NCBI RefSeq assembly: GCF_001194135.2
Contig: NC_068981.1
Span: forward strand, 49,552,026 to 49,616,025
DNA from: Octopus bimaculoides
Taxonomy: Eukaryota
Direction of reading: 5' to 3'
DNA length: 64,000 bases
Within the stretch, counting starts at the first letter, position 1; the number at the start of each line of letters is the position of its first letter. Shown one piece after another: positions 31,295 to 62,310 of the stretch. Under the pieces are notes generated by a model. It was not told the origin of the DNA and made no database searches. It was given only the letters and a program-made list of their open reading frames with translations. The position numbers were made by a program, and so were the translations under genes.

Positions 31295-32517
31295 ATGCGT
31301 GTTCCCATGACGACGAAGGCTTTTGAAGTGCTATTATGGCTACAAACTGGCCTCGTTCTAGCCGTGGCAGTTGTGCTGCGGGTGACGTCGGCCGAATGCA
31401 AATTCCCCAGTTTTATGCACACGGAGCAGAATGCTTGGGTACGAGGTTACGAAAAAGGTGACCGATTTGTGGCGTACTTTCAAGATGGTATTATGAAAGC
31501 CAGTAGTTGTCGCGATCGACAATGTACACGATACGAAAGAAAATGTATAGAAGAGTTCCCTAACGGTAAATATATAGCATCTCACATAGAAATTGCTCAT
31601 TCGACCAGTTATGTTTGTATGGAATTCTTGCGTCGAGGTGAAATCATTGTTCAGCTAAAACAATCAGAAATATCTAAAACGAATTATCCAGAACTTTGTA
31701 ATACGTTAATGTTAGATATGTGGCCATTAGTACTGCTAGAAAAACTACTTGAGCACAAAGTTAGCTGCCCATTCTCAGGGGGTTACAATTTACAAATGTT
31801 TGATAGCAGTGGGTCTGCGCTATGCCGTGAAGAAATAGTTCCTATTAGGCTTGAAAGTGAATGTGAATCTGGAGAAGGTATGATGATTCATTTTAGAACG
31901 AAGGCTTGTATACACAAAGATTTAAATATGGAAGTAAAACAGAAATTATATTGTCTTGCACATTGGAATGAAGGCCCGTTCAGATTCATCATTCTTCGAG
32001 AAAAAAATCGACGCGACCATATCTGGTCTCTACGAGTAAAAGAGCCTGTTAATGAAATCAAAACCGCAGCTTTATTCATGGTGCCTGTCTGTGACACTGG
32101 GGAAGAAATTACTCAAACGAAAATGTATCTGGAATTGAAACTTGATAAGTATGTGGTGTCAACAACCTGCGCCGACGAGTTCAAAGATTGTGCACAATAC
32201 GTGCAGTTTTGTGATTCAGGGTATCGCCAACATTGCTCAAATTCATGTCGAGACTGTCGTCAAGACGTAATTAAATTATGTCCGTTTTCTGAGCGCTTGC
32301 GTAGCACTTGGGTGCAAAGCATGAAAAAAAATAAGCAACTCTCCATAAATATCACACATTACCAAATCTCTATTCAAACTCTTGGGATGTTTCACTGTCT
32401 AGTTGCCAAAGGTAAAAGTACACCAGATAGTGATGTTCTTTTACAATTGTTCCAGAATGGATGTTACCCAAGATACACATGTCTTCAAATTGAGAAAACA
32501 GCACCGTCAGTTATAAG
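31295..32517 (+). CDS. Coding exon 1 of an uncharacterised secreted/cell-surface Cys-rich repeat protein with an ShKT-like domain (~662 aa with exon 2)
   Basis: The 417-aa ORF is of high complexity. ATG at 31295 (alternative in-frame ATG at 31307) is followed by a hydrophobic signal peptide (LLWLQTGLVLAVAVVLRVTSA|EC). The exon is preceded by a pyrimidine tract plus acceptor (TTTCTTTTTCTTTTTACAG, ends 31264) and ends at donor AG|GTAAAT (32517|32518). Motifs CKFPSF..W, CPFSGGY and LYCLAHW resemble the DUF7043/DUF7042-type (PTHR22255-like) modules I recall; not verified by search. Confidence 0.88.
32168..32257 (+). other. ShKT (ShK toxin-like) 6-Cys domain within exon 1
   Basis: CADEFKDCAQYVQFCDSGYRQHCSNSCRDC has spacing C-x6-C-x6-C-x7-C-x3-C-x2-C, with the CxD start and CxxxCxxC end typical of ShKT domains. 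Confidence 0.7.
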
Positions 32518-33079
32518 GTAAATATTCATTTCTGTTTCACTCATTGACATAAATGTCTACTATGAAAATGATTACACATTTAATTTAAATATTTGTCCTA
32601 AACATAATAAATACTCCTAATAAGAAAAATAGCAAAAATAACAGCAGTAATAAAATATAATTACTGTAATTAATATCATTTTGATAACTTACATACGAAT
32701 TTCGGAAACTAATGACGACACCCACAAATTTCGTGGCAACCTTAACTTTTGTACTAGAATGGGCCTTATGTTATCATCTTCAGAAATCAGAAAACAAATT
32801 AAGCATGTGTACTTATCGATAATAATAAGAAGAAGAACTACCCATGAGGATCCCACGGTTATTTTGAAAATTGTATGATGAAATTGGATATTTTTCTGAA
32901 AGATTTGATTGTTATGAAGATGTGAAAATCCTCATAAACAGCACTGATGGGTAAATCAGTCAACCAATTAATCAATCAATCAATCAATCAGTCAGTCAAT
33001 ATGTTTATATGTCTCCCCATCACTCTATTTGTCTGTCTATCTACCTACACATCTAACTATTAGTCTATCTACCTACCTA

Positions 33080-33155
33080 GATGTATATCTACCTACCTAC
33101 CTACCTACCTACCTACCTACCTACCTACCTACCTACCTACCTACCTACCTACCTG
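33080..33155. repeat. (CTAC)n microsatellite
   Basis: Seen directly in the sequence. Confidence 0.95.
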
Positions 33156-33439
33156 CGTACCTATCTATCATCCTAGCTACCTATCTCTTAGTCTCTAATA
33201 ATATAGATCTTCTCTTTCGCGATTTCCTTTTCTATTCCCGTTTCTTTCTGTGTTTCCCTTTCTCCACTTCATTTCATTTTCTTTATATATATATATCTTT
33301 TCATTCGAATCATAACTTCCCTTGGTGACGTAAGTGAAATACACGTAAAATAACAGGCAAGATTAACTGAATAATGTTGCCATAAACTCTTCTCTTCTAC
33401 GTGACGACACGTAGTTGTATATAGTTTTTCTTGCTTTTA

Positions 33440-36400
33440 TGTTACACGGCATTGAAGTTCTAATCTGCTAAATTGAGCATCTTGTAGCATCTCACTCCGG
33501 GGTCTGACAACTAATTTTAATCTCTTGCAGTTTAGGGCCTTTATGCACTTAAACAATACTCTTTCTACTTTCGTATTGAAGACATCTTTGGGTGTTTTGT
33601 AGAAATAAAGATGATTTCTGCACAATATTTAACCTCAACAATTTAAGATCAATCTTCACAAAGTTTAATTTCAGACTGGTTTTCAGACTTCTTTTTAGGA
33701 AGGCTCAAAAATAACCGGCAGGTACATGAATTGTCTAATGTCTTGTTTCCGAAATTTCATACCTCAGCTTGGTATAATACTCTGCTTCTTGATTACAGTA
33801 TCAGATGATCATGACACTCTAATTACAGACTCAACAATTTTATCACCATCTTTACTGTCCGGACTTTATTTCAATCTTCTCCTTCCAGTTTATATAAAAA
33901 AGCTCCATAAACTTGTTTTATCGTTTTCTGTGCATGCACAACGAAACCTCTTACAAAAATCTTATAGCAACAGTATTAGCATACCTAAGCATTTGTACTG
34001 ATTTGGGTCTAACTGTAGTTCCTCTGATGCAAGATGAGCTATAATATCATTTCTATTATCGTACATTCTAAAATGCTATATATCATTCTCTGAATCTAAT
34101 TTACGTTTCAGTTTATTTTCTATGACGCTGTAATAATTTCCTTCATCTCTTCCTTCAAGAGTCCTCTCTTTAAACAAACTCATCTAGACGTGTGACACAT
34201 TATCGCATGCATTTTTAAAACACACTGAATGGAGAAAATTTACTTGGAAGTTTTGTTTCTTTTTCGCTTCATGTCACTATTTATTTTAATTTGATCTCAT
34301 TAACACTAATTATATCACTAATTATCATCTCTTGAAGAATGACTGGGTAATGTTTTCTCTAGAACTTCAGAATTTATATTAGTAAACCCTTGTTTCTCTC
34401 TCTCTCTCTTTGTCGCTTACTCTCTGCTTTTTCTAGTATAAACGGATTACAATGGATTACGGTTGCCTATTCCTGTGGAGTGTAAATATTGTTATCATCG
34501 GCTTTTTATTTTTATTCTTAAATTCTTCATTTTGCCTCTCAGTGTTTCCTCTTCACTATTTTATAAGGGGTTATACATCGCTTGTAAATTACTGGCAAAT
34601 CCATTTGCATTTTAATCAAAGGTTGTACAAAATGATAGTTTACCAAGGACGTCTTGTATTTAAACAATTTTGCTTTTGTCATCTGCTAGTAATCCGAGAT
34701 ACACTCATTTCAGGATTTAATATTCGAGGCATTATCTAGATCCATTTCAGTAATGATGTTTCCTGCTTCATTTCTGTCAAAGAAATTTTCTAATTTTCAA
34801 ATGTCATCCCGATTTCTCTATAGATATTCTTACAGAAAATCTAGTTGATAATTGTACTTTCCATAAAGTTTAAATTTCTCATGAAAAAAGATTTATTTTT
34901 CCTGAGTAAATGTCGTTCCTTAGCTTGTTAAGAATAATTGTCAAATTTGTTAGACACTGTAAATAGGCTAACTGTACTGTCCGATGTTGAAATGCAGTTT
35001 CTAACAGACATAGCATTTTCTTCGAGATCTTGAAGATTTCTGGACAAAACGTGATTCATACACCTTCCTTTTATCGATCCTCACAGTCTATGAATTAGTC
35101 GTTCTACATCTTCCACTTATTCAGACTATCTTATCGATCTTTAATTGGCTTTTCGTATATTTCCTCATTTTCAGACGCTTTTTTGTGTCCATCACACATT
35201 GAATATATCATATATACATATTAGCATATCTTTTTCCACAATGTTCACAGTTAAGAGATTTTACACAAGGTATCCACCCGGAACTAGTCGGAGATATCAA
35301 GCAACGTTTCTTTTCTATTTGTCTTACAATAGCAGGCAATCACATTGTTACATCATATGTTGAAATACACTCATTTAGATTTATCAATATGTTTCACAGA
35401 AATTTGTTATATTCTTTCAGTCCGTAACCATGGAAAAAGTATGGTTCAGTTACATTTCTTATTACTACCTATCTGATACCGCTTTCATATATTTGCTTTC
35501 ATAATGGTAAAAGCCATCTGCGCATCAACATATTCATCGTAATTTTCTACTTCGTTTACCAACTATATTTTATCAGCGCATCTGGCATGCTTTCCTCAAC
35601 TACGCTTCCACGCCAGTTCCTGTCTTCAACATTCCAAATTACGTCATCAATTTTCTTATTTCTTACATGCCCATCAAATAAATCACTCCGCTCCGATTGA
35701 AGAAACGCTTTTGATAGTAGAAATGGATGATTTTAATGCTTTTAGTTCGAATAACGTCGGCCACAAATTTTGTTTTCTCCCTCCTGTTAAAGTAAACCTA
35801 TCACAAAATTGATGTTGCTCGCACACGATGTTTTAGTGTTTCGATAACTGTTTTGAACCCTCTTTCCTATCTGGGATTTATGTCTTAGATATGCCCTTGC
35901 ACCTTTTTAGCATTTTTCCATAGCCCTTTGGACCATTCTTCTATGCAGCGCAAATATTTACGTAATGTTTTAATATCCGTCTGCTTTCCTCTATTTCTTT
36001 CCAAACACTTCACCTACTAAAATTGAAGCGGATCTGACCAAGTCCCTTGTTTCCGTTACATCTTTTAGCCCATTCTTCTATGCGACGCAAGTCTTAACGC
36101 AAAGTGTTAATATTGCCCTCAGTTCTCCGCTTCCATCATGCCCTCTGATTTCCTCATTCTGCCCTCTGATTTCCTCTTTTTCATTCCAACCAGTTCACCT
36201 ACTAAAATTGAAACAGATCTGATCAAGTCCCTTGCCTCAGTTCGATCTTTTGTTAAAATGTATTTCAGAATCTCATCAACTTTTTGGGTCACGCGTTTCA
36301 CATTGTAGCAGTCGAAGCTTCTCAAATTCACCGGCTTGCTCTCTGTTCTTGTAACTATTATAGCATCGAGTTTTATCCAGAGCTTTCTCTAATTCTGAGT

Positions 36401-37400
36401 CATATCTTCTCGTAATTCAGTTGTCCCCACATTATATTGATTGGCCGACCGTTCCTCAATTACATCTTCTCCTTGCTTACGCATTCGCTGTTCTACACCT
36501 ACATTATCCACTTCAAGGTTATTATCACTACGGAGGATTTTCCTGATTGTCTGAATTTGGCATTCATTGAGAAAGCCTCTATTCAGTACTATTCTTGTGT
36601 GATTCATGAGCCCATTTTCAGTAATCTGGAACATACACAGCAATTTCCAAAGTTCTAATAATTTTTTTCCCACAGCTCAATATTTCTCTTTGTCGTTGTC
36701 TACCAAGCCTTGCTCACAGCACTTAATCGCCTTTTTGTTCATATAAACAGACCACTGGCGTTTGCGAGCATGTTGCATAATTCGACCAGTTAAAGGACTA
36801 CGACTGGATGGAATCTGATCTTCCAATCTACTGCCCTCTGAGGGGCACCTGCCAGGTGCGGTAGATTTGGTGTCTTGGACATCAAGAGTAGTCATCCCGT
36901 GCGTGACGTCATTTGGGTTGAAATTGTCAATATTGCAAATAATGAGAATGATTTTACAGGATTTGCTCCTTGGATGTGTTTATCTGAGATTTTCATGTAA
37001 AGGGCTACCCTAAATACAATACCAGCTCCAATTTGGCTGCCGACCAAGGCTTTGGGACGCCAAGTTCGACCTTTGTAAATTGCCATAGGCCTCTCTGAGA
37101 CGCAGAGGTTACAGCGGCCTATTTTGGGCATGGGTGGCACCAGTTTCACATGGGCAGCCGCATAGAGAACTACACTATCTTAACTGTCCTTATTCTGCGG
37201 TGTAAGGTGTGATTTGAAAGAGATGTAACTACTCTTTCTATAATGCCAAATGACTTCTCAGAGAGTCCATTGCTAACTTGAAATCTTCGGTGGACAAATT
37301 CAGCATATGAAAACTCAATACGTTGCTTTTGTCCTTACTCCTATAGCTAAGGTGTTTTTATCGTTGTTTTTGTGACTAGCTATGTTCACTAGTCACAGGA
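33440..37400 (-). mobile_element. Old, near full-length, heavily mutated R4/Dong-like element, antisense in the intron
   Basis: Collinear minus-strand fragments: LELWKLLCMFQITENGLMNHTRIVLNRGFLNECQIQTIRK (N-terminal), VKRVTQKVDEILKYI..SILVGELVGMKKRK, KRGFKTVIETLKHRVRA, TVRID (RT, weak), KRGLLKEEMKEIITAS, HFRMYDNRNDIIAHLASE (decayed zinc knuckle) and YYTKLRYEI (RLE end). It has many stops and frameshifts, and an (AAT)n/(AAC)n array lies at its 5' side. Confidence 0.6.
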
Positions 37401-37479
37401 TCCGAGTGTGGTGGGTTGGTTGGCTGGCTGGCTGGTGTTACTTCCTGTGTTATTGATGTTGTTGCAGTTGTTGTTGCTG

Positions 37480-37518
37480 TTGTAAATGTTGCTGTTGTTG
37501 CTGTTGTTGTTGTTGTTG

Positions 37519-37571
<53 letters not shown>

Positions 37572-37650
37572 TATCTCCTTCCCGAAACGGCTGGCGTCGT
37601 TCCAAAGTTTGAAACTATTGTTGTTGTTGTCGTTGTTGTTGTCATCACCG
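37480..37650. repeat. (GTT)n/(ATT)n compound microsatellite
   Basis: Seen directly; it lies at the 5' side of the antisense R4/Dong-like fossil. Confidence 0.95.
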
Positions 37651-37699
37651 TTGTTCTTATTGTCCAACTGACCCTATGACCATACATAATAAATCATAT

Positions 37700-38960: not shown

Positions 38961-39335
38961 NNNNNNNNNNNNNNNNNNNNNNNNNNNNNNNNNNNNNNNN
39001 NNNNNNNNNNNNNNNNNNNNNNNNNNNNNNNNNNNNNNNNNNNNNNNNNNNNNNNNNNNNNNNNNNNNNNNNNNNNNNNNNNNNNNNNNNNNNNNNNNNN
39101 NNNNNNNNNNNNNNNNNNNNNNNNNNNNNNNNNNNNNNNNNNNNNNNNNNNNNNNNNNNNNNNNNNNNNNNNNNNNNNNNNNNNNNNNNNNNNNNNNNNN
39201 NNNNNNNNNNNNNNNNNNNNNNNNNNNNNNNNNNNNNNNNNNNNNNNNNNNNNNNNNNNNNNNNNNNNNNNNNNNNNNNNNNNNNNNNNNNNNNNNNNNN
39301 NNNNNNNNNNNNNNNNNNNNNNNNNNNNNNNNNNN

Positions 39336-39394
<59 letters not shown>

Positions 39395-39435
39395 CGTATA
39401 GATGTAATTTTGTACATATACGTACGTATATATGC

Positions 39436-39468
<33 letters not shown>

Positions 39469-40343
39469 TTATTTATATTATTATATGATTGTACGCAACT
39501 CATCCTCTTCCAAGTAGGAATTATCTTAATAATTCTGTTGCGCATTGTATACGAACTTTATACACTTTCGGTTTTCTCTGATTCTCTGTCATACTTTTAC
39601 TTCCTCTCCTCTCCCATATTCCTACCCCTTGCTCACGTGGCTCCTACGTGACCATCGGCTATCTTTCTCTCTTCTCCTAACTTCTGTTTCTTTCTTTCTC
39701 TCCGTTGTAGCTGAAACAATGAAGACGTGTTCTTGTCTGTCTCCTGTCCAAGCTTGATTTATGCGTTCGCCACCACAACATTGATTAGGCCTAACAGCCC
39801 TTCCTCTTTATTTTCTCTGTCCGTTTGTGATATCAAATTTGCTCCTTTTATTTAATTTGCTTTGCGGGAGCAACTGTTTAATCGATAGCATATATTGTTG
39901 TTAAATGTTTGAAATACGAGAATACGATAGTAGAAAAACAGCTATCAACTGATAAAAGGTCGTTCTTTATGCTGTTTGTCTTAATTTCCATTTGTGTCTT
40001 TCGTTGTTAGAAAAAATAGTTCATATTCCATGTACTCGTACTTCGTATTTTTTGTTGTACACGTTTTGTTGCCCATATATATATANNNNNNNNNNNNNNN
40101 NNNNNNNNNNNNNNNNNNNNNNNNNNNNNNNNNNNNNNNNNNNNNNNNNNNNNNNNNNNNNNNNNNNNNNNNNNNNNNNNNNNNNNNNNNNNNNNNNNNN
40201 NNNNNNNNNNNNNNNNNNNNNNNNNNNNNNNNNNNNNNNNNNNNNNNNNNNNNNNNNNNNNNNNNNNNNNNNNNNNNNNNNNNNNNNNNNNNNNNNNNNN
40301 NNNNNNNNNNNNNNNNNNNNNNNNNNNNNNNNNNNNNNNNNNN

Positions 40344-40394
<51 letters not shown>

Positions 40395-40529
40395 GGTGTG
40401 TTGGGTAAGACTAATCATCAGGGATCATGTAGCTATTGCTATCTCTACAACTCTACAAATTCTTCAGTTATTATATATTGTTTGATCACGTTTTTTGATA
40501 ATTCCTAAGAAGGACACAAGTCAATGCAC

Positions 40530-41000
40530 TTATGTAGCAATCAAAAATCCTTAAACCTGAAGTTTGACTCCTATATTTCACCGCTAGCGTTGCTATTGTT
40601 ATTTCTTTACCTCCACTGTTTCCAGTTTCCTTTTCTCTACATAATAGCCTTTAAGTTGATATGGTCAATTTTCCTTTCACTTTTCGCATGACAATCTAGA
40701 GCACGATATTTGTTTTAGCTTTTAGCCTCTTCCCAATTTCTGTTGATCATTGTTCTTGTTTCCATAATCTGTCGTTTCTGGCTTTGTTTTGATTTGTTGC
40801 TTCTTTTTAAGCCAGAAAACAATTTTTGTATTGATGTATCGTAGGTATTCCTATTAATTTTCTATCACTTTTACGAGATACTTTTAGTAGCCTTACAGCG
40901 AATGAATTATATTTTCGAGTTGCATAAGGCTCCAACCTCCATTTACGTGATGTAAATACAATCATTTTGCTAGATCTTATGTTGTGTAGTCTAAATGTCG
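40530..41000 (-). mobile_element. Degenerate RTE-like LINE 3' fragment
   Basis: WRLEPYATRKYNSFAVRLLKVS...LKAIM*RKGNWKQWR resembles the RTE C-terminus. Confidence 0.35.
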
Positions 41001-43655
41001 TCATTACTCTGTGTTTTTTCTTAGTAGTCTTGTTAGTTTGTTTAGAACATTAGCCGTTAACATATTACAGGAGCATCTAAAATTTGTTTGCCTGTTAAAT
41101 TTTAGAATTAGCTCTGTTTTAGACATTATTATAAAGAGTCTATAATATTCTTTCTTAATAATTTCTTTCGTGTGCTTTGTAGTAGTTCATTCATTGTTAC
41201 GTATTTATATGTATTTGGCGATGATAGCAAAATATTAATGCACTAACGTAATAGTTATACTGCACACACTTCAAGATGGCCTCGACATATTGTTCTTATT
41301 AGAATATCATAAAACTGTTTCTGGTAAATTCATGTACTGCCAGGAGTTATATTTCGAATTTTATTATCTTCAGCACACAAACATAGTTGATTGTTCTAAC
41401 AGAGCATTTCGTTCAGAGTTCACTTGAGTGTAATCTGTTGCTTAAAGGTAACCCTATTAGAGAGAAAAGAATTGACGACTGAGAGACCCAATAGAATATT
41501 TCTTTTCTAAAGGGTAAACGATTTATATTTTCATAAATCCGTATTCTGCTTGTATTTTCAAAATTGAATGCTATTTATATGTGGACGTTTTTGGCCAGGA
41601 AAACTGTCAACATACGATTGCAGTCAATTTATGTCATGCTCAGATCTTTTACCGTCGCATTCTTTTTGTTCGTATGTGATTTTGCAGCATTATTCGTTCG
41701 TATGAGACTTTGTAACATAATTTGTGCTCTTCCGGAAACGTTGTTTTTTTCTATTCTATGTCTGTCTCTAGTATTTAGAGTGGCTATTTAATTATTCTTG
41801 TGAATGAAATTGACTTCCACCACGGTAAGCCAGTCCGATGGTGTCTCTGATTGTGCCAGTTTCACATTAAAATTTGTTAGATCTTTAAAAGCGCATTTCA
41901 ATGTGTTATTCAGTTCTGAAAAGGTATCATCACCTACTGTTGTTTCTACTTATTTTATATATATATTATATGTATTACAATGTTGTTATATTTGTCAATG
42001 ATTGTTCAGATACTGCATCAGTGGTTTTGAGTTTTAGAATTGAAAGACTATTAACACGCGTAGAGAAGCTCATATACTAGTAAAGTATTATACTTACAAT
42101 GTTTCATACTAAGAGATCAACTTATGGATAATCCTAAACATTTACAAGTACAAGACTTTCTAAGAATAGTAACAGAACAAAACTTGAAACCAGACGGACT
42201 GTGGCAATATTGAATTGACAAGTGATAACTCTACACTGTTATGAACAGTGCTTTATTAATTCAGAGAGATTTTGACCTTCCTCACCAGCTCCATCATTCG
42301 TTAGCTGAGATGGGTTATCTGCGAAAGAGAATTAGCAGTACTTGTATCATGATTATAGGGAAATGAAAAGTCATTAGGTTGTGTGCTCCGGTATTATTTT
42401 CTAAAATATAAAATTTAGGCTTATAATTCTCTATAACTTATTGCGAGTATTCGGTAAATCATTTTATGATTTGCCATATGCATAAAATGTCTTAACATTT
42501 AGGTTTTGCTGCACAGCTCGATAATGAACATTGAGAAGTTGATATTTTCATTTTGCTGCACTCAGATAAGTATAGACATATCTCCGTGCGAATATTTCAC
42601 TCCGGAATTCGATACATTTAACACAATCATATTTTACGTATTACTTTATTAATTGGTATGTCGTCAACTGAGTGTATTGTTTTATTAGTCAGTAAACTGC
42701 GTAATAATTGTTCTCCTTTTTGAGAAAGAAAATTAATGATGACCATTCGGATTAATGTTTCGTAGAAAGATATTTCTATGAGATATTTACAGGCTTTTAT
42801 AATTGTTGGCAACATTCTTTGATAGTGTGTTGGTGCAAATATGTATGATATATATCTCCTAAAGTATTGTCTTTATGAATTCTGTTTATGTATCGCTGCT
42901 CAAGAGGAAATGTTGAAAATCTCTTTCGACGAATTTTCTTAATTACTTCTTCGAAATAGCTATTATTATTCTTGAAATATGTTCATGTTAAGATATAACG
43001 TTAAAATAGTTCGTCGGGACATATTTTATTACGTCAATCTCCTTTCATTACTCTGTATATTACGAACGCTTTAAGAAACTTTTGTTTCATCTTTAATTTC
43101 ATCGAAGGAGCTACTGACAACTTTATAATAAAACTCATACTAGAATGATACTTTCATCTATCAGGTGTGAGCATTTCAAAATTGTAGGCCTGTAACTTTG
43201 TACAAAAGTAGTTAACCAAAATTAAATGCAAATTATCATTTCACTGATTATTAAATAATCAACCACCAACATTCTCCGATAATTAACTCCTAAAGAGACT
43301 GTTTCGTTGTACACCTACCGCTGCTACTGCTACAACAATCCCCCCTTATTGTTTGTGATAGTCAGTTGCATATCAGATCCATTAAGACCTATTCGTTCCA
43401 CAGGAATACAATAATTTTATGTACATCTTCTTAGTAATATGATCCATCCACATTAATATGTGATCGAAAGTAGAACTAAGAAACTAATAAACCGCATCAA
43501 TTCCTTTGAACAAGTCACATTTTACCACTATGCTAATATTCTTATGCTGAAGTATCAAATAAGTTGCATACCTGTATGTGTATATATATAAGATTCCTTG
43601 CTACATTTATACTGTATATACTAAAGAATATATAGGTATAATTATAAGCGTTAGT

Positions 43656-43842
43656 AGGGGTGGTGAGCTGATAGAACCGTTACTGCGCCGAACAAAAGAA
43701 CAATGATGCTTAGTAGCATTTCTTGTGACTATTTACGTTTTGAAATCATACCTTTGAGGTCGAATTTGTTGCGCACAGAGAACAACGTAATCGACTAGCA
43801 CCTTCCACTAAAATTTCAGGTTTCATGTCTCATAAAAAAATT
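43656..43842 (+). mobile_element. SINE family A, degenerate copy
   Basis: GGTGAGCTGATAGAACCGTTA...ATGCTTAGTAGCATTTC...GAGGTCGA...GTAATCGACTAGC. Confidence 0.65.
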
Positions 43843-46800
43843 ATCGTAAGTTGCATTAAATACTTTCGATGTCGGATATGCAAAAGACAGTGTCTTGCCA
43901 AATTCTCATGAAAAATAACGGCCATCCCTCAACATCTACTTTTCTGACACCAGATATTTAAAAAAAAATTATTCAGGTTATTTTAAGTAATGTCGTATCC
44001 TCCCAAATAATCAAGGCTATTCATGAAAATTTCATGTACACAATCTTTAAATGTTCAATGTCTACAATTCTTCTAAAGTTTAGATTTATTCCTGACAAGC
44101 AGGCATGTGCTGCTGTATCCAGTGCTATGTATGTTAATTTAGCATCATTGACATTTCCTCCCAATCGTGTTTGTCAAGGTGGGAGGTATTAAATTAATGA
44201 ATTCTAATAGATTATATGCAAGGCGTTATACAGACAACAGATAACATGTAAATGGAAGGAAAACCATCGAAATACTATTGAAAATAATTTTTAGCATTTA
44301 CTTGAAAAGTGTTATCAGTTTGACTTTAAAATTAATGAAGTAGTTATTTTAATGAAACGCGTTCATTAGGGCCAGGTGGGCTCTGAAACTTATAATGAAA
44401 CTGAAATCTTCATAGCACCTTATCAAATTAAAACAATTTATATCATTTTAGACATAAAGTTTATTTTTTATTCCTCTGTTATTTTAACGGTAGCAGTCGT
44501 TCTCCTTTTGCAATGTTGTGTCATGGTATTCCCAAGTTTTAAGCCATTATATTAGCTTTCCACTTTTCTGATAATGACCCTATCATCTTCGTATTGGAAG
44601 AAAGTTAAATTTGTCAGATTGAAAGTACGAAACAGAACGTGACTAACCACATCATATTTTGAATAGTGGTCACTTTTTGATTACTCACTCACAGTAATTA
44701 TACGTACATAAATACATGCAGTATGTGTAACTCTATGACACTCTTTCTCTCTCTCTCTTTCTTTCTCTCTCTCTTCTTTCTCTCTCTCTCTCTCTCTCTC
44801 TCTACCTCTCAATATAACTGAGATGCTAATATAAGTAAATTAATACATACATAGATGCATACATAGAAGCACACACACGTATGTACATGAATACTTATAT
44901 ACATACAAACGCATACCATTTTCTCAAAGTGACTCGCACTAACATCCTTTTCAAAGGAAATGACTAAGGAGCAAAATTGTTAACCACTCAGCCAGGCTTT
45001 GCACTCTCAATTGATATTTTCTACGAGATTTACTACCATTATCTGTTACAACAATTTGAGTTTTATCGATATTTATAATGCAATTTTACAACTTATCGAT
45101 TCAATGTCCTCTCTTCTGCCCCAATTTCGGATAATTAAAGCATTCGTTAATGTGAAACTTTAAACTAGAAGCAAGCCAGGGAAAATGTAGCAGAAAAAAA
45201 GAAATAAATTCTCAATTGAATTTTGCTCTTCAAAGTATGTTAAAATGGAGTATATTATAGATAATTGGAATAAAATAACGACCAAAAATATTCTAAATAT
45301 ATGTAATAAAACAAGAGTATCACTTTTTAACATCACTGATGCATATTTCATTTTACATGCCATGGTTGTTAATGCTCAATAAAATGGCAAACTTACTTTT
45401 CCTCACAAATCACTGTTTACATTATTTTCAATTAATTTTATATTTTTAACTGTAGGTTACCTCCTTGAAATTTTCAATGTTTAAATTTTATACAACAATA
45501 AATAATTTAATAAATATACTCTCTAGAAGTAAAATATCAAAGGGAACCGCAGATATAAAAATTGCTTTAGTATTTTGATCATTTAAAATAACTCCATAGG
45601 TAGAATGTTGCAAGTTTATAACCCAATAAATGAGAAAATGGTACATGCATCCCATAACAAAAAAAATATTGTTTTCACTGTGGATTAAAACCAGTTTTGA
45701 TTAGACCTAGTAAATTGTATTAGTTTTCTCCGCACGTATGACAACACGTGAAATAATTACTGCTCACGTACACTTTGCGCATGTGATCTCAGTCTAAACG
45801 AAACGCAGGAAAAATAGAGGATGTTTGGAGTACTGTATATCTGTTTTGAAAATGTTACAGAATAAAATTTGTGTAGAATGTAGAGATGTATTGACAATTG
45901 GAACACGACGACTATACAAAAGTTGGATTCCTTTCAATAATCTGAAGAATGCCTGTTTTGGCTGACATGCAGGAATTTAAGTCGCTTCAGAAATGCTGAA
46001 TTTTATTTCTATGTAAAGAAATTAATTTGATTTTTTAACGAAAGTTTGCAATTTATTGACTGTTTAGAATATATTTCATTGTAGTAATATCTTCTGGTAT
46101 GTGTTGCTGTTGATCGCTGGTAAAAGATTCAGTTTGACAGTACCTATTCATGTTATAATATTCCAGTTTTATAGAAGTTTTGCAGAAATGACACGTAAAT
46201 GGTTCCAGTATAACAGGGGTTAAATTGTGTAGAGGTTTTGCATCGTATGTTAGGAAACGTTTCGAGCGAATTGAATATATTGCCAATAATATCTAGAAGA
46301 AAGTATACTGGGGTTAATTAGGAATGCGGAATACTTCTAGATTGATTGCATTTTGAACGAAACAAACCCATCATTGAACAATTTACGATACATTTTGTAG
46401 AAATATTTAACTAAATGCAATGAGACTAATGAAATGTGGAGAACTACCTGGTACATAACGTATGAAAACAAAACTACTATACCTTTGTCTATTAGTGTCT
46501 TCCTTAACTATTCTACTTTATATGAACCAACTATCCATTTGGTTTTCCTAGTCTACTAATACAAATATGTGTGTTAATTCATTTATAGATATATGTTGAA
46601 TGCTCTACAATGGCCGATACTCTAACTGGAGATAGAAATGATGTAGAAGCTGATCGATAATTTCTATATTTAATCCCATTGTCCAAATTTGTCACATTAT
46701 TCCACACTATTTCTACGTAAGAATTTCATTCAATATACACATGTCTATCCTCTATAGTTGCCTAACACTATCTCAATGAGCCTGGTAGTTTAGGTAGATG

Positions 46801-48918: not shown

Positions 48919-48928
48919 TAATAATAAC

Positions 48929-48963
<35 letters not shown>

Positions 48964-48990: not shown

Positions 48991-50145
48991 CCCCACAACC
49001 GGAATATTCCAACAGATGGCCATCCATGCTCGTCATCAAATAACCAAAAGAAAAAGAATGAAAAATGGTCTAGGGAAGATCATAAAGAAGTTCTTACAGC
49101 TTTCTACCATGCCATATATTTCCCTACAGATAAATCTAATACTGTACAAACCTACTTAAACTGGAGACAGAAACACCTTGAAGTAAGACCCTACATAGAC
49201 AGTAACAAACTTGCCAACGTCAGAAGAAACATTATGAAAAAAAATTACTAACTGAAGTANNNNNNNNNNNNNNNNNNNNNNNNNNNNNNNNNNNNNNNNN
49301 NNNNNNNNNNNNNNNNNNNNNNNNNCATACAGAAATCGACGCAACAGAACTACATGATCTAAAAAATCAAATCATGATTGAATGGCTGAAAATTAAAGAA
49401 ACCAGTATGAATGAACGCGACACTCTCCCCAAAATTCGCAATTCGAACCAAAACCTGAAAATAATTGGTAAAATCCGCCTTGCACTTAAGGATATAATTT
49501 CAGCTAATGATGTTGATATTACAGATCTCAACCACCTGTACTGTGCATCCGCAAAAATCTCAACGGTTCTATGTGGTGAAAAGATTAGAAAACGACAACA
49601 CTCCCACAAAAACCCTTCTTGGCAACAGCGCATTCAACACCAAATTAAGCTACATAGATCTGACATAGAATGTTTGAAAAACCTTAAATTTGATAAGAGT
49701 ATCAAACCTACAAAGACCCAAAAACTAAAGAAAAAATATAATGCGAAAACCATAGTTGACATTGATACCACCATAGAAACCATCAAGCAAAAGGTATGTG
49801 CTAAAGCTGCCCGTATAGCAAGGTATGAAAAGCGTGTTAGATTCTTCCGAGATAATAACATGTTGAAAAATAACCCCAAAACTTTCTACAGGAAGATAAG
49901 GAAAACACCAGTAACAATAAAGTCTGTCCCATCAAAAGAAGAAGTGCAAGAATTTTGGAATAAAATCTGGGCAGAAGATAAAGCACACAATGAAAAGGCC
50001 CCTTGGATTGATAGAATATCTACAGACCTAGACTCCTTAGAGGAGCAAATGTGGGAGGGGGTCAAGGTAGAAGATATACGATCTGCTCTCAGGATGTCAA
50101 GCAAATGGAAGTCTCCAGGAAAGGATAACATTCCTAACTTCTGGT
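48991..50145 (+). mobile_element. 5' part of an R4/Dong-like non-LTR retrotransposon
   Basis: Starts directly after a (TAA)n array. It reads KWSREDHKEVLTAFYHA..NWRQKH..NKLANVRRNIMKK (frameshifts in A-runs), then ORF 49374 with PSWQQRIQHQIKLHRSDI, KQKVCAKAARIARYEKR, NPKTFYRKI and WKSPGKDNIPNFW (the motif preceding the RT domain). It is cut by a gap. Confidence 0.85.
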
Positions 50146-50315
50146 NNNNNNNNNNNNNNNNNNNNNNNNNNNNNNNNNNNNNNNNNNNNNNNNNNNNNNN
50201 NNNNNNNNNNNNNNNNNNNNNNNNNNNNNNNNNNNNNNNNNNNNNGATAGATAGATAGATAGATAGATCGTTCGATAGATAGATAGATAGATAGAAAGCT
50301 AGCTAGCTAGATAGA

Positions 50316-50486
50316 TAGATCAAAATTATTGCACTCAAATTCGTTAGTACGCTGAGTTTCAAGAGTAATGCTAGTATTCAGCCATTTTGAATTCAAATTC
50401 AGCATTCACATTCAAAATAGCTGAAGACTAGCGTCACACTTGACACTCGGAGTACCATCGAATTTGAATGAAACTGTTTTGATCCA
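50316..50486. mobile_element. ~170-bp foldback MITE
   Basis: An imperfect palindrome over its whole length, with inner stem CTAGTATTCAGCCATTTTGAAT / ATTCAAAATAGCTGAAGACTAG. The right end CATCGAATTTGAATGAAACTGTTTTGATCCATAC is shared with 19832-19866. Confidence 0.7.
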
Positions 50487-51871
50487 TACATGCAATTCCC
50501 AAGATGTTTTTTTGGATGCCCTTCTTCTCGTTTGTCCACTCACTCGTAGATGTGTGTGTTTGCGTGTGTGTGTGTGTGTGCGCGTGTGTGTGTGTGTGCG
50601 TGTGTGTGCGTATGTGCGCGCACGATCGTGTGTGTGTGTGCGAACGTGTGTGAGAGTGTATATATGTGACTCTCTTTGTGCGTTTATTTCAATGACATTT
50701 TACAATCGAAGATTTTCAGATTTTACTATCATTATATTCATAAAACCAAGAAATAATATATTGATCGATTAAAGCTCACTATGTAGTGGATCATATCGAA
50801 TTTGAAAAATCATTTGGAAACGTTTGCCAACATTTTGAATAATTGTTACTTTCACAGATTCAGTAATTAATGCTATCATTAAATCCCCTGGGTAACGCTG
50901 TTGTAATAATGCTTAAATTAGGTGTCAACAAAAAAATATATATTAATACGAAATTTTTATAGAACACATTTATAACTAAATATAGCCATATATGTTACTT
51001 TTTTGGACAGCTTCTCATATTTTTTATTCTCTTCAAATCTGTTGAGAATAATTACTTTCAGATTAGTTTTGTCAAATATGTTTGCTAGACTTTTCTTGAA
51101 ATAACCTCATTTTAAATTAAATGTTTCTTTTTATTTATCATGTCTACAAGGAAATGATATAAATCAATTTGTTTGGAAAATAGAAACGACAGATTTAGTG
51201 TATTAAAAAGAGTTGATTTAAAATAGCATTAATAGTGCACACTACATGATAGTAACTAATTATATCAACACATGTGACATGGAAAACATGAAAGAAAACA
51301 AATTCCAGCTGTGATACTGTATCTCAGAGCAAATTTTTCTTGTAATTCAAGAGAAATCTGTTTCGGTGGTGTACAGGAATTGGATGATGCCGACGAAATC
51401 GTATTATTAAAAATAAGATTCCAGGCGGTATGTGTTTTTTTCTGCAGTGCATTGAATGTATAATAAGTGTTACGGATAAACTGGTTCTAAATACACAGCC
51501 GCCGTGTGAATGACGACATATTCATATCTCTTTCACCTGCATATTGCATATTAATAGCGTAATACAGAGACAGACACATTGACAAGCATATAATATATAT
51601 ATATATATATATATATANNNNNNNNNNNNNNNNNNNNNNNNNNNNNNNNNNNNNNNNNNNNNNNNNNNNNNNNNNNNNNNNNNNNNNNNNNNNNNNNNNN
51701 NNNNNNNNNNNNNNNNNNNNNNNNNNNNNNNNNNNNNNNNNNNNNNNNNNNNNNNNNNNNNNNNNNNNNNNNNNNNNNNNNNNNNNNNNNNNNNNNNNNN
51801 NNNNNNNNNNNNNNNNNNNNNNNNNNNNNNNNNNNNNNNNNNNNNNNNNNNNNNNNNNNNNNNNNNNNNNN

Positions 51872-51904
<33 letters not shown>

Positions 51905-51929
51905 TGTATATCATCGCGATAGTTGCAGA

Positions 51930-53390
51930 CATGCTGGGGTACTACCGTTAGCTTTGCTACACTTTAACTAAAGATCTTCCGATAGTGACATTTGGTGAAT
52001 GCTGGAATTTGATGTTGCTACCGTCATCTGTGTTTCTTGACGCTGGCTAGTTTCCGTCGAGACATTGGCAAGAGGAGATCCAGTTTTGTTTTGAAGATGC
52101 TTGGGTCCACCACATGTAGCTCTCTCAGGCTCTGTTGGGTTTGGAATATTAAAGAGCTGTGGACCTTTGGAACACATCTTGTTGCAGTATCTGATCCTAC
52201 GTCCTGATGGCGATGATTGGATTTTCGGTACCATGCGGTTACGTTCCGTTCTGATATGATTTATAATACAAACGTTAAGTACAAGAATTTTCCAGATGTA
52301 TATCATTGCATATCTTCTCTGCTTTCGTTCTGGGGAGTATATTCTTACCTTTATCCGCCTCTCCTATTAGCTGGCATGTCGTTTCAGATGATCATATTTT
52401 TGCAGCTTCGCTGGATTGCTTCCACTTCAGTGGCCATAGTTGGGAGCAATAATCCAAACAGCCGAGGACAAATATCCTCCAGAAGGCCATCATGGTTTCC
52501 TGTTCCCGCGTTCTGAAAGTTCTAAGGATCCATGCGGCCAAGCGCCAGCATTTCATTGCACCTCGAAATATGCATCATTACTCATGTCGATATCGATTGC
52601 AACCCCTGTTAGGCCAGTGAATCCTGTCTGCTTTTCATTCAGCTTCGTGTATTGGTGGCATAGGGCTTAGATATTTCTAGCATTAAACTGCATCTTATTC
52701 TCCTCCAGGGAACTGTATCCATCGAGAGAGTTTTGTATCTGCATAAGTAGCAAGAGTTGCTGTATGAGCAGCTGAGAACATTTCAAAGAGGGCCGCAATG
52801 AATAGCAATATCCTCAAGAGAGTGCCTTTGTGTGCATCTTGTTGGAAGTAGCCCCGTTCATTACCATTACCTGACTTCTGTCTTTTAGAAAGTTAATGTA
52901 GCGACTATGCAAAGATTACGTTGCTTGTGACATACACCATGGTGGATTCTATAAAAGTGAGCTATACCACGTCTACATTTGAGTTGTTGAACAGCTGCTT
53001 TAACAATCAGGTGTAGTGCTGCATGAAGTGTCTTACGTCCACCAAGTCAAGAGTGTGTTAGTCAGCAAAACGTCTCTTCGGGAAAGGCAATTAGGTCGCT
53101 TCCGACCTTTCGTTCCATTACTTTGCAGATGTGTTAGGTAGAAGAGATACGTCTATAGATTTTAGCATCTGCAGAGCTTTCTCCGGTATGAATAAGGTTT
53201 ATTATTTCCCCTTTAGATTGCCTTGAAGCTCTGAAATGGAAGATGCCACAGTTTTACAAGGGCTCGTTTACATTGTATCAGAAGAATTGCTACGAATCCA
53301 TCGAAACCAGCATCTCAGTTTGTGCCTACGTTATCTATTGCCAGTATTTTGATGTTGATGTAATCAATATTCTTGCTCTGGCTGGTTGAA
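51930..53390 (-). pseudogene. 5'-truncated CR1-group (Jockey superfamily) LINE, RT and 3' end
   Basis: The minus strand reads LFNNSNVDVV, FLKDRSQVMVMNGATS, QGTLLRILLFIAA..LATYADTK (decayed YADD) and IYIWKIL..VPKIQSSPS..RYCNK..GPQLFNIP..SRQETQ..SNS. It has multiple stops and indels. Confidence 0.8.
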
Positions 53391-56432: not shown

Positions 56433-58425
56433 ATATTGTCAGAGAAATCTGAACTTGCCGTTGACTTGATCCTGGAAGCTAAGGAGACGGGAAACTATAT
56501 CGTATAATTTTTCTCGACGTTCTCACGATCTCCTCACCCTTCACCGTTATAAACACTAATTAATAAGAAACATAATGAATAGATTCTCAATTAAAACTTT
56601 ATGTATCATGCACATCAATAAGTATTTATCTTTCCTACTATCCACCATCATATATGAATAAGAAATGGAACACATATTTTGCAAAATTTAATCAGTGATA
56701 TACACAATGTAAGATCATTATTATTAGAGCTACAAGGGTTGTGCATTTAACAGTAATCGGGAAAGTGTCCGACAAATGTTTTGGGACATTTTGTTATACG
56801 GCTCTACATCTCTGACATCAAATGCTCCGGTATCGAAAACATAAATTACCTTTCAAGTACTGGTGTCAATTTTATTGGCCAATTCCTCAACGCAAAATTG
56901 ATGACTTAGTGCCCGAATTATAACTTGTTATTTTAACCATTACAGACCGGTAGATTTTTTAACGCATTGAATTCCATCCCTGTTTTTGTCAGTTTGGCTT
57001 TCCAACATGCCGAATGAATTCACCCGACAAACGTCAGCCAAAAATAAGTGTTTTGCGCCTCATTTTGTTGGATATTAAATATTTTTCTCCTAAAATGTGA
57101 TTCAGGAAGATAGTCATTTCTTTTTTTTTTTTTAAATATATATATAACTATCGGCATTTAGTGAATAACTGAATTGCTACCAGCGTTTGTTGAGCCTCGG
57201 TGACAGTCAATTATTCATTTCTTAAAAGATCTTCGCAAAAGACATATATATATATATATANNNNNNNNNNNNNNNNNNNNNNNNNNNNNNNNNNNNNNNN
57301 NNNNNNNNNNNNNNNNNNNNNNNNNNNNNNNNNNNNNNNNNNNNNNNNNNNNNNNNNNNNNNNNNNNNNNNNNNNNNNNNNNNNNNNNNNNNNNNNNNNN
57401 NNNNNNNNNNNNNNNNNNNNTATATATATATATATATTAAGATGATTTCTTTTTGTATTCGAATGTCTGTAACAGTGTGTAACTGTGTTATATAATCAAC
57501 AAAAAAATATCGCTTTGGGGTAGCGAGGCTTTAAAAATCAGTGGATTTAATTGTTTTAATGAATGTATTAGCGGGAGATAAGCAGCCGTATTTTACTTGC
57601 TGTCAAAATCATTGCGCTGCGCATAGGATGCAGAAACATTAGGTCGTACAATTTTCACTGAACACCGAAGCCTCGAATCTTTTACAGGTTACTCAGTTGT
57701 CAACGTTCCTCAAACTAGTCCACACCAACTTAAAGTGCCAATGGCATATTCACAGTTGAAGCAACTTTTATAATAAGTCTGCCCGTCCACATTTCACAGC
57801 TAAACCACGTCACAAAATAATTTGCACAAGTGTCATTAGCTGTAACACTGAAACCGGTGATCATGGAAGTATCATCCATGATACATGCAATGACAGACCG
57901 TTACTTAGTTCAAATAATTTATAGCAATTCCGGAGTGTTGACACAGCTATATTAGCATGTAGAAATATTTTCTAGGGTGGGCTAACAAGTCAAGCAACAA
58001 GCGTTATCTAATCCATATCACGTCATTTAATATTCATTTACAGCCATATATGCATTTGGAAATAATACACTACTGAGCCAGTCGAAGGTCGGCGATTGTC
58101 GTACGCTGAGGACAGGTAAATACCAAGAAACTAGAGTCCGTGCGTATCGCAGATCAAGAGGGGAAGGATGACTTCCCTTTGCAAATGCAGACAGGACGCA
58201 TTACAGATTTAGATCTACCCTAATTGCACCAAATCCAGAACTACGTACCTTCCTTACACATAATCTTTTTACTCGGTGACTAGTAGCCCCAACACCGTTC
58301 GGTTAACAGTGCGCATTCAAAGCAGTGATCAATAATTTTACGAAACCGGCATACTTTTGAATCGCTTTAACAATTCACAATAATGACTTTTATTACTTCC
58401 TGCCTCAGTTCATATATATATATAT

Positions 58426-59550: not shown

Positions 59551-60775
59551 CAATAGAAAGACAGTGGAAGAGAGATATTAGAAGTAGCGAGGTGAAAAGA
59601 CAGACAGTGAGAACTGTTGTGAGATCAAGAATAGGAAAATGTAGGTAAATGTTTGGACTTGGTAGTAGGTGAAATGTATAGAATTGCAGAAAAATAAAAG
59701 AAGTAAAATAAATAAACGATAAATGATAAAATCATTTACTAGGATACAATAGATTAGTTATATGTCAGAATTTTAGTGAAGGGAAGAGATGGAATTCATA
59801 ACCGAAAGAAAGAATAAAAATATAAAAACGAGCTAGACAACCTCTGGTATGCAAATGGCAAAATCACCTTTAGGATGCCTTTAATTTGTACAAGCATTCA
59901 AGCGTGTATACAAGAACATATGTAGGAGAAATAAAGACGTATAAAAAGTTAAGAAGTAAAAGCATATTGAATATATGTAAAAATAAGAAAAGCTCGTATA
60001 TTAACATTTTTCTACAAATCAAATTGTGTCCACCATAAAAAAAATATATATATAAATGGCTTTAATACTACACTACCGCTGAATCTTCTACATGTAAAAC
60101 GCGCATTACAACAGCTTCTGAAGCATGAACTCTAAGGTTCATGTCCGAGAAACTCATTCCATCCTTCAATTAGCTTATTTTAACACCTTAGACGGTTATT
60201 AAACTGATACAAAATACAATGTGAAAATTTCTTCTCCTAGTTCTTGCTGGAAAACTTTCATGGAAGAAAATTAATTGCATGTCTCAAAATCGCTCTTCAT
60301 TTTCTGTAGCGTAATTAATTCATTAAAAGTTCAGCTGAGTGAATTTTGTATACATTTATTTACTATAAATCTTCAATGGAATGCATGTGTACATTTCCAT
60401 CTGCTAACTATAATAGGACTCTTTCTATGTCTAAGTAAGTATTGCCTTGATAATAAAATTCCATCATGTTAGAGCCTACTTTAAAATTTATGCCAACCAT
60501 TTCTATTGTAATTTAAACGTATCAGGAACATTTCACGTGAAGAATACTAAAACATATTTTCCTAATAGTTATGTTTCCAACAATACTATGTATACAATGT
60601 CTATCGAATTTATTTTATGTCCCAAATACAATACTGTAGTTCTTACATTTATTTACTCGTAACATATTTTTGTGCGTGTAAGAATATATATAAATACACA
60701 CACGAATATATATATTTAGAAGAAAGTGTGTATGAAAACATATTGACATGGAAAATGCTATTTGCATTGCATATG

Positions 60776-60861
<86 letters not shown>

Positions 60862-61544
60862 TTTACATGTGTACATATATGTGTATCTGACTATAGAAAT
60901 TGCACCTTAACCTTTTATTATATATGAATTTTACGTTTCTTAATCTACAGTATTACCTGAAGAGGAAATGCAATAGTTTTCTTATTCACTATGTTCTTCT
61001 TTCCATTTTATAACTATTTTAATGTAATTTCAGGATATGTAGCTCACAAATGAAGAAAAAAGACGTTATATTAATATTATAGTAATAGGGTGAAAACTTC
61101 ACATGTGAAATGTCATATTCTGTTTTAGAACTTATTCGACTGTAAATGCCAATGCATGATAGTGATTAAAGATTTTTTTTGTTAATGATTACAGTGCATC
61201 TCCATACGTTCTAATTGAATTTTGAATATAACATTTCATATTTTAAGTCGTAAATAGTGGTTTTATTTTAAACACATTCTAAAAGGGGTTGGCATCTTCA
61301 CTGCGTGCTATATGTACGTAAATTGTAAAAGATAGAAGTTTTAAAATGTCAGATTTGTAAGTATATTATGTTGCAATGTATTGTTAATTTTCTTCACTGC
61401 TGTTCATTAACTACTCTAAAAATCATCTTTATATTGATGTATATTTTCGCAATCAAATAACAAGTATCTTGATTAAAGAAATAATTTACGAATTTAAAAT
61501 TACGTTTTCGAATTAACACTTTTCTATTTTTTTTTCTTTTTTAG

Positions 61545-62310
61545 ATATCGACTCGGACGCAGTATAGAATGGCCCCTTGCTCACCCAGGAGAGTTGAAGA
61601 CATATATATGTAGTGAAAACCACTTTGATTACAGCCCGGATGTTCAAGCCGTCCAGAGAAAACCAATGACCGTGTTAGTAAATCTCAAAAAAACACACTT
61701 CGTTAACTGTAACTTACATCCCGTGATTAGTAGGTATACCTTGTTGAGAGATGATAATTTTTGTGAATATTGTCTTATGCATGATCCCAGTCTATCATCA
61801 GATCGGATTGTGTTATATAGCTTGAACTGCTCTACGAAACCGAGGCATATTAATCTGGCATGTTTGGCTTCATTCGATATCAACGCTCAAACCAAAGCAG
61901 TAGTTCTTAAAGCAGTCCATCGCAAACATAATTTCGTTTGCTGGGTTTTCACATCACGAAACAAAATTCTTGTGCTACCACCATCTGACTGTACCAATAC
62001 TACAGCTCATGAACAACCAATTATTGGAGGCAGAGAGGACGAAGCCTCGGAGTTTTCCATTATGAAAGATGTATCTCGAACATGTGAAGAATTATGTCTA
62101 ACTTCAACGCCATCCTACCTCACGGCTAACACTACGTTATTACCGTCAAGCAGCTATTGGGATAATAGTTCAGGTGTATACCGTCCGCAAGCAGAAACGT
62201 CAGCAAATTCCAAAGGAACATTACCAGAATGCAATCGCAAGAACACTTATGTAATCACAGTTATGTCTGTATTATTTTTTCTGATACCTCTTGTTTGTGT
62301 CCCCGCCTAA
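61545..62310 (+). CDS. Coding exon 2 (terminal) of the same gene
   Basis: Acceptor TTTCTATTTTTTTTTCTTTTTTAG|A at 61544|61545. Exon-1 AG plus A makes an Arg codon and continues in frame: SVIR-YRLGRSIEWPLAHPGELKTYICSENHF, joining the 238-aa track ORF (61594 is 48 nt downstream of codon 61546). It ends with hydrophobic VITVMSVLFFLIPLVCVPA and TAA at 62308-62310. Confidence 0.88.

Follow-up and report, generated by a model that had tools for sequence, protein, structure and literature searches.

Gene structure at the locus

The window analysed here is a stretch of 64,000 nucleotides (64 kb) from Octopus bimaculoides (contig NC_068981.1 of assembly GCF_001194135.2, positions 49,552,026 to 49,616,025 of the forward strand; all positions below are those of the window). 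It contains a gene of two coding exons encoding a 662-residue protein, in which two copies of a beta-rich module pair (A1-B1 and A2-B2) flank a six-cysteine ShKT-like module, with a signal peptide at one end and a low-complexity stalk and hydrophobic tail at the other. With 34% GC the window is rich in AT, and 16 runs of N interrupt it. In a six-frame scan, the longest N-free stop-to-stop frames, with 427 codons (about 31268-32521) and 270 codons (ending at 62310), correspond to the two exon stretches, and the next longest frame has 162 codons. No other convincing coding open reading frame (ORF) was found in positions 1-31000, and a scan of the window against Rfam gave no match.

Coding exon 1 (31295-32517, forward strand) begins with an ATG at 31295 and encodes residues 1-407 together with two nucleotides of codon 408; a second in-frame ATG, at 31307, corresponds to the start (MTTKA) of the Sepia protein described below. 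Coding exon 2 (61545-62310, forward strand) ends with the stop codon at 62308-62310. The donor at 32517/32518 reads AAG/GTAAAT, and the acceptor at 61544/61545 consists of a 20-nt pyrimidine tract followed by AG. Since the 1223 nt of exon 1 and the 766 nt of exon 2 add up to a whole 663 codons including the stop, the exons join in phase, and the residues across the junction are RYTCLQIEKTAPSVIR/YRLG. The single coding intron (32518-61544, forward strand) is 29,027 bp long as assembled, the lengths of the N gaps in it being estimates. Six N runs flagged by the program (38961-51871) and a seventh at 57261-57420 are all intronic and hit no coding base; thus frame continuity over the gaps is irrelevant to the product, and only the length of the intron is uncertain. 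In addition, the junction (...TAPSVIR/YRLGRSIEWP...) aligns without insertion in the orthologue from Sepia (Acanthosepion) pharaonis and in four more distant homologues, so no exon is concealed in the gaps.

The cuttlefish orthologue (P0001, 657 residues) shares 81% sequence identity with the octopus protein over 95% of the query, a level that points to strong purifying selection. Its gene also has two coding exons, and its lone coding intron (about 10 kb) lies at the same codon and in the same phase (...GTTATAAG/GTAAG ... CAG/ATATCGAC). Two other homologues (P0003 and P0005) are encoded by unbroken ORFs on contigs of 2.2-2.3 kb that were put together from sequencing runs and appear to be transcripts. 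With canonical GT...AG borders, agreeing phase, an identical intron in Sepia and homologues that cross the junction, the two-exon spliced product proposed in an initial annotation of this DNA is upheld, and all the motifs quoted there are present in its 662 residues; we are nearly certain that the gene is real and that its product has the architecture A1-B1-ShKT-A2-B2.

At the 5′ side of the gene, there is an acceptor-like sequence (tttttacag/AAAGTG) at 31263 on the forward strand, 32 nt upstream of the ATG, and the frame is open from this site into the ATG; the Sepia gene has a counterpart (ttctgttgcag/AGGC) about 45 nt upstream of its own ATG. Acceptor-like sites at this place in both genes suggest an upstream 5′ exon outside the window. 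The public Octopus vulgaris model of the gene (P0002) does have an extra upstream exon (MLFYENDRLCPKGK), which is absent from the window, and its gene range is 128 kb; given this span, positions 1-31262 are probably a 5′ intron of the same gene. At the other side, an AATAAA hexamer at 62560 (forward strand), 250 nt downstream of the stop codon, is a plausible poly(A) signal and would leave a short 3′ untranslated region.

Modules, internal duplication and relatives of the protein

We predicted the structure of the protein with AlphaFold2 in two runs. The first, with 6 sequences, gave a poor model (predicted local distance difference test, pLDDT, 59.7); the second, with 116 relatives, gave a pLDDT of 88.3 and a predicted template modelling score of 0.81, the only parts of low confidence being residues 1-3 and 602-639 (the stalk). 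The latter score implies a defined packing of all the modules. A1 and A2 are each predicted to have seven strands joined by short hairpins and then helical turns, and B1 and B2 each to have seven to eight strands; the hairpins linking the strands are 2-5 residues long, so that the chain forms a meander.

The signal peptide (31295-31393, forward strand as for all the modules; residues 1-33) was read from the sequence, with the hydrophobic core AFEVLLWLQTGLVLAVAVVL and the cleavage motif TSA/EC; AlphaFold2 gives it a lone helix at residues 7-31, and 89 of the 116 full-length relatives have a hydrophobic N-terminus. (Signal peptides and glycosylphosphatidylinositol, GPI, anchors were called throughout by by-eye rules and a hydropathy script, and omega sites by a rule of thumb.) Module A1 (31394-31744; residues 34-150) matches Pfam DUF7043 with 44.4 bits (cut-off 27) and is predicted with high confidence (pLDDT about 90-98) as a beta-meander of seven strands with short hairpins and a helix after them; its conserved residues are C35, F37, P38, W48, C84, C108, R114, Q120, and C135. 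Module B1 (31757-32164; residues 155-290), with eight predicted beta strands, has two strongly conserved motifs, CPFSGGYN (158-165) and RLESEC..GEG (185-195). It matches DUF7042 with 43.8 bits (cut-off 27) when residues 151-288 are scanned alone; this match is unlisted in the scan of the whole protein, and the domain is precomputed for the O. vulgaris orthologue.

The ShKT-like module (32165-32260; residues 291-322) is followed by module A2, which is split by the intron. Its first part (32273-32517; residues 327-408) scores 35.4 bits with DUF7043 and 20.4 bits, below the cut-off of 27, with DUF7044, and bears the most conserved motif of the family, NGCYPRYTC (388-396); its second part (61545-61686; residues 408-455) begins with YRLGRSIEWP. 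Module B2 (61699-62109; residues 460-596; pLDDT about 92-97) is homologous to B1, with conserved cysteines C463, C481, C503, C514, C540, and C557 and glycosylation sequons at N502 (NCS) and N559. Then come the Ser/Thr/Pro-rich low-complexity stalk (62110-62244; residues 597-641, 45 residues, 40% S/T/P), a poorly conserved segment with sequons at N603 and N615 for which disorder is predicted (pLDDT <50 over residues 602-639), and the hydrophobic tail TYVITVMSVLFFLIPLVCVPA (62245-62310; residues 642-662, up to the stop codon), presumed to be a GPI-attachment signal. Over the whole protein, Pfam lists DUF7043 with 72.7 bits against the cut-off of 27, in two stretches corresponding to A1 and A2; this score and that of B1 substantiate the resemblance to DUF7043 and DUF7042 that the initial annotation had suggested. 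Segment scans of B2, the stalk and the tail gave no Pfam match, and DUF7045 was absent on B2.

Comparison of the two halves of the protein as profiles built from the 116 sequences revealed that they are homologous: hhalign aligned half 1 with half 2 over 211 columns (98.6%, E 1.3e-15), A1 with A2 (97.7%, E 2.4e-12), and B1 with B2 (94.8%, E 4.9e-8). The A-B pair is thus, as judged from these profile alignments, an ancient internal duplication with the ShKT six-cysteine knot between the copies, in agreement with the A-B-ShKT-A-B arrangement initially proposed. The alignment of the halves was marginal with 6-sequence profiles, the duplication being clear only with the 116-sequence profiles, and a pairwise BLASTP comparison of the halves was not significant. 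A1 also aligned with B2 (72.7%, E 3.2e-5), which hints that the A and B modules may themselves be related to each other. Certain pairs of cysteines are lost together across the family (C329/C368, C158/C220, C481/C503, and C540/C557), suggesting that they form intradomain disulfides, and two of these pairs, C329/C368 and C158/C220, lie at corresponding positions in the two halves. Four separate Pfam DUFs are in this way shown to represent a single A-B unit that was duplicated, the copies being separated by a constant ShKT knot.

The six cysteines of the central module (C292, C299, C306, C314, C318, and C321) have the spacing C-x6-C-x6-C-x7-C-x3-C-x2-C. Their columns are 97-99% conserved, the pattern ends in C-x3-C-x2-C in 111 of the 116 relatives, and the family consensus is CxD[ED]...Cx[KR][TS]CGxC. 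Pfam ShK (PF01549) scores 15.1 bits on the octopus segment, under its cut-off of 20.9; across 66 sampled relatives it is matched by 15, with a best E-value of 1e-8. A search of the PDB sequences with the family profile gave eight matches, of which seven were ShKT peptides, aligned to profile positions 292-327 with E-values of 0.12-8.6; individually weak values of this kind are as expected for a domain of about 35 residues. At the level of the family, then, the ShKT-like module of the initial annotation is, by its sequence signature, a true ShKT-fold knot, which forms a constant part of the family's structure.

To describe the family we used an exhaustive HMMER profile search of 1.84 billion cluster representatives (clusters at 50% identity), which yielded at least 453 clusters at a threshold of E<=1e-3, of which 214 reached E<=1e-30; most are 600-780 residues long and are matched over their full length. 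Word-indexed searches with the protein, with a 6-sequence profile and with a 116-sequence profile returned the same six proteins only; the size of the family was seen through the exhaustive search. Among the 66 relatives scanned with Pfam, DUF7043 (PF23070) was found in all 66, DUF7044 (PF23071) in 53, DUF7042 (PF23069) in 33, ShK in 15, and DUF7045 (PF23073) in six, and these tallies give the canonical order DUF7043-DUF7042-ShK-DUF7044-DUF7045. The octopus protein shares both the sequence and the full architecture of this family with no essential difference; its A2 fits DUF7043 better than DUF7044, and its B2 falls below the detection of DUF7045.

Besides Octopus and Sepia, the named relatives come from Mytilus, Sinanodonta, Potamilus, Pinctada, Nucella, Pomacea, Babylonia, Elysia, and the annelid Paralvinella. 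All of them are labelled “uncharacterised” or “hypothetical”, and the automatic names in UniProt are “DUF7043 domain-containing protein” or “ShKT domain-containing protein”. A literature search found no mention of DUF7042-7045, of their Pfam or InterPro numbers, or of PTHR22255, and a check for a characterised top match with the same architecture found none. The suggestion of an undescribed cephalopod system therefore holds in one part, since no member has been characterised, and fails in the other: this is a large lophotrochozoan family, present in molluscs and an annelid and already divided into Pfam DUFs, and it is neither cephalopod-specific nor new as a sequence family. The gene itself is ordinary, being the orthologue of “hypothetical” deposits from O. 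vulgaris and Sepia pharaonis, and is not a surprising discovery.

Probable membrane attachment and proposed function

The signal peptide, the glycosylatable stalk and the hydrophobic tail noted initially are all present and are kept across the family. In the octopus protein, the tail is 21 residues long, uncharged and for the most part hydrophobic, and the chain ends with it; the tail is preceded by a polar spacer (633-641) and, about 9-13 positions upstream, by the small residues A628, S630, and G632, of which A628 or S630 is the candidate GPI omega site. A terminal hydrophobic segment was found in 112 of the 116 relatives, with a median length of 16 residues and a median of four residues after it, and at most 10 residues follow it in 102 of these 112. 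The protein is very probably extracellular and attached to the membrane. By the established rules for GPI signals, the combination of a signal peptide, a terminal hydrophobic tail without following residues and small residues upstream points to a GPI anchor, which we consider the probable mode of attachment rather than a transmembrane helix.

The explanation that in our view best fits the whole, and which we hold with moderate confidence, is that the protein is a GPI-anchored binding protein of the cell surface. The ectodomain would fold as a single compact unit, raised above the membrane on the glycosylated Ser/Thr stalk, with a GPI anchor replacing the C-terminal hydrophobic tail. The beta-meander modules, possibly calycin- or lipocalin-like barrels, would bind the ligand, and the ShKT knot, rigid and conserved, would clasp the halves together or offer an interaction surface between them, and would not act as a channel-blocking toxin. 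Conservation outside the cysteines is highest in the motifs NGCxPRYxC in A2 and CPFSGGYN and RLESEC..GEG in B1; these lie in the two modules flanking the ShKT knot, which is therefore where the functional surface probably is. That beta-barrel pockets bind a ligand is a more tentative matter: a calycin-like pocket for a hydrophobic ligand is our leading guess, from the predicted meander and a GxW-like motif.

Comparisons with known folds bear on this guess. In the family consensus, A2 opens with FPxxhxGxW, which is similar to the GxW motif of calycins, and the best domain-sized Foldseek match, obtained with the first, weak model, was the lipocalin-fold protein Tp0751 (probability 0.92, template modelling (TM) score 0.49 on the target, E 0.29), nothing in the search with that model being significant. 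Antiparallel meander modules, a helix after the last strands, the GxW-like motif and GPI display, predicted here, would be likenesses to the lipocalins and calycins; unlike them, the octopus protein would have four modules and an ShKT knot instead of a single barrel. Lazarillo, a GPI-anchored insect lipocalin, may be a comparable system. No lipocalin match by sequence was found in Pfam among the 66 members or in the PDB with the family profile. The Foldseek search with the high-confidence model, against 350,542 PDB chains and BFVD, gave no TM score above 0.13 in the top 50. The matches listed (neurexin LNS arrays, phage receptor-binding proteins, sliding clamps, and DDB1) were rejected as spurious long all-beta alignments, with TM scores of 0.13 or less and root-mean-square deviations (rmsd) of 15-60 Å; two nominally “significant” E-values among them come from alignments about 680 and 840 columns long whose rmsd is 26-31 Å, and were treated as noise.

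Several of these observations weigh against the proposed explanation. The octopus protein itself has S-T-W and not G-x-W in A2, the top 50 matches of the good model all have low TM scores, and the idea of a barrel with a ligand pocket is weak. In addition, five relatives (P0064, P0071, P0075, P0084, and P0103) have a Cys-rich tail, QIP(C/L)xCKCxC (for example, QIPCLCKCKSC), past the hydrophobic segment, which suggests a palmitoylated transmembrane anchor, so that the type of anchor may vary between lineages. The latter point leads to the strongest of the alternatives, namely that the protein is of the transmembrane type I, or secreted or matrix-bound, such as an adhesion or extracellular matrix component with a terminal transmembrane helix and no cytoplasmic tail. 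The 21 uncharged residues of the octopus tail would be enough to span the bilayer, and in some relatives 11-27 residues, including the Cys-rich or basic tails, follow the segment. However, few residues follow it in the great majority of relatives, its median length is just 16, and both the octopus and the Sepia proteins end at the hydrophobic stretch with no basic stop-transfer residues after it; we therefore regard this alternative as unlikely.

Less likely still is a reversal of the roles within the ectodomain, in which the ShKT module would be the active part, binding and modulating a K+ or other ion channel on its own or an adjacent cell, like the ShKT domain of MMP23 or the cysteine-rich domain of the CRISPs, and the A-B modules would merely present it. 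The cysteine framework is almost invariant, lies at the centre of the protein and is confidently modelled, and the tethered ShKT domain of the membrane-bound MMP23 reportedly acts on Kv channels. The framework marks the fold, however: in ShK the channel-blocking Lys-Tyr dyad is borne by the loop between the third and fourth cysteines, and it is this dyad that marks toxin function. The octopus loop is DSGYRQH, in which the dyad is absent; across the family the loop varies from 7 to 10 residues with hypervariable sequence, and only 10 of 111 relatives have a Lys paired with an aromatic or hydrophobic residue there. Since the dyad is not conserved, a conserved role as a channel blocker is unlikely, which weakens the ion-channel modulator idea of the initial annotation. 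Outside its cysteines, the ShKT module is also less conserved than B1 (1.10 versus 1.52 bits per non-Cys column), and none of the family's top motifs falls in it.

The setting of the knot differs from those already described as well. The sea-anemone ShK toxin, MMP23, and the astacin-ShKT and CAP-ShKT proteins of molluscs and nematodes all share the six-cysteine framework ending in C-x3-C-x2-C, and in the octopus protein a single ShKT module lies between two large beta modules, whereas elsewhere it stands alone as a peptide or is appended to the C-terminus of a protease or CAP domain. A survey of mollusc ShKT proteins reported free peptides, astacin-ShKT and CAP-ShKT only, and the octopus-type architecture is not among them (PMC6409789).

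We also considered whether the protein is distantly homologous, or analogous in function, to APCDD1; it would then be a set of membrane-anchored tandem beta-barrels sequestering lipid-modified ligands such as palmitoleoylated Wnt. Similarity to APCDD1-type barrels had been raised in the initial annotation. APCDD1 has two tandem homologous beta-barrel domains, each of two curved sheets with a helix-loop link, together with a type I anchor and a lipid pocket (PMC10193966). The general logic is common to both proteins (after a signal peptide, a tandem pair of homologous all-beta units rich in disulfides, then a membrane anchor at the C-terminus), and a G-x-W lies near the start of the unit in APCDD1 and in the octopus family, where FPxxxxGxW and PPTIEGHW align. 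Against this, none of the 66 members matches Pfam APCDDC; the family profile left APCDD1 chains unmatched at E<=10 although 8e0r and 8e0p were in the PDB set searched; the mouse APCDD1 ectodomain gave at most 1% in hhalign with every module profile and -1.0 bit in hmmsearch; and APCDD1 was outside the Foldseek top 50 with the whole chain of the high-confidence model. With no match by sequence, none among the top 50 whole-chain structural matches, and the motif as the only thing that aligns, membership of the APCDD1 family is rejected. The two proteins further differ, apparently in the number of strands (about 15 per half here versus about 11 per APCDD1 unit, a count inferred from the strand labels of the published work), in the absence of ShKT from APCDD1, and in its transmembrane helix and cytoplasmic tail (8E0R/8E0P) as opposed to the GPI-type tail of the octopus protein. 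We judge this alternative, homology and analogy taken together, very unlikely, and functional analogy by itself possible but unsupported.

Returning to the GPI-anchored binding protein, a broader reading by analogy is that the family may form a new class of protostome GPI-anchored receptors, with a fold arrangement outside those in the PDB, capturing a lipid, a lipid-modified morphogen or another hydrophobic cue; this we put forward as doubtful. In that arrangement an internal ShKT knot would hold four small beta modules together, and the receptors would act like APCDD1 or the GPI-linked lipocalins. If true, this reading would place the many orphan invertebrate proteins with ShKT modules for the first time in a functional context that is neither toxin nor protease. 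Its size, high-confidence model and family-wide GPI-type tail, with no neighbour in the PDB and no literature, make the family a well-defined target in the “dark” extracellular proteome of molluscs and annelids.

The alternative terminal exon and other intronic features

The O. vulgaris model introduced above encodes 461 residues, and its exon-1 part differs from that of O. bimaculoides at two residues only. In place of exon 2, it uses a 29-codon terminal exon that corresponds to 34783-34872 (forward strand) of the window, behind a weak AG acceptor at 34782/34783; this exon adds 29 residues (NFLIFKCHPDFSIDILTENLVDNCTFHKV) and a stop, and would break module A2 in half. Protein identity between the two octopuses is about 90% for this exon versus about 99.5% for exon 1, indicating that it evolves like an intron. 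The exon is probably an artefact of the annotation, or else part of an isoform that is non-productive, and the public O. vulgaris model appears truncated. Thus, although that annotation employs the short exon and the window has the acceptor for it, the alternative that the 662-residue product is an artefact of two ORFs from separate transcripts, with the truncated form as the true product, is exceedingly improbable, given an exon that is so poorly kept, the halving of A2 that it would cause, an exon 2 that extends the homology in all relatives, and the overall agreement with Sepia in identity and intron position. The correct full-length gene model is one lasting product of this analysis.

The intron contains one longer ORF (49374-50145, forward strand, 257 codons), which is broken by the gap at 50146-50245, where it ends with ...SSKWKSPGKDNIPNFW. 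Pfam gave no significant match for it; its final motif resembles the start of the reverse transcriptase region in non-LTR (long terminal repeat) retrotransposons, and the ORF may be a fragment of a long interspersed nuclear element. In addition, microsatellites of trinucleotide type at 37389-37680 and 48844-49160 are read as poly-Asn, poly-Leu or poly-Val/Ile, depending on frame and strand, and give rise to spurious ORFs of 60-90 residues.

Most of the N runs whose flanks are seen in ORF translations are bracketed by simple repeats (SLSLSL, YIYIYI, CVCVCV, and poly-K/F), for example at 38832-38960/39336-39400, 40344-40390, 47331-47370, 51872-51930, and 57200-57445. Judged from the translations and not from the DNA, this suggests that the flanks are (CT)n, (TA)n, (TG)n, and (A)n, and the gaps appear to be places where a short-read assembly broke at a microsatellite, not missing unique sequence.

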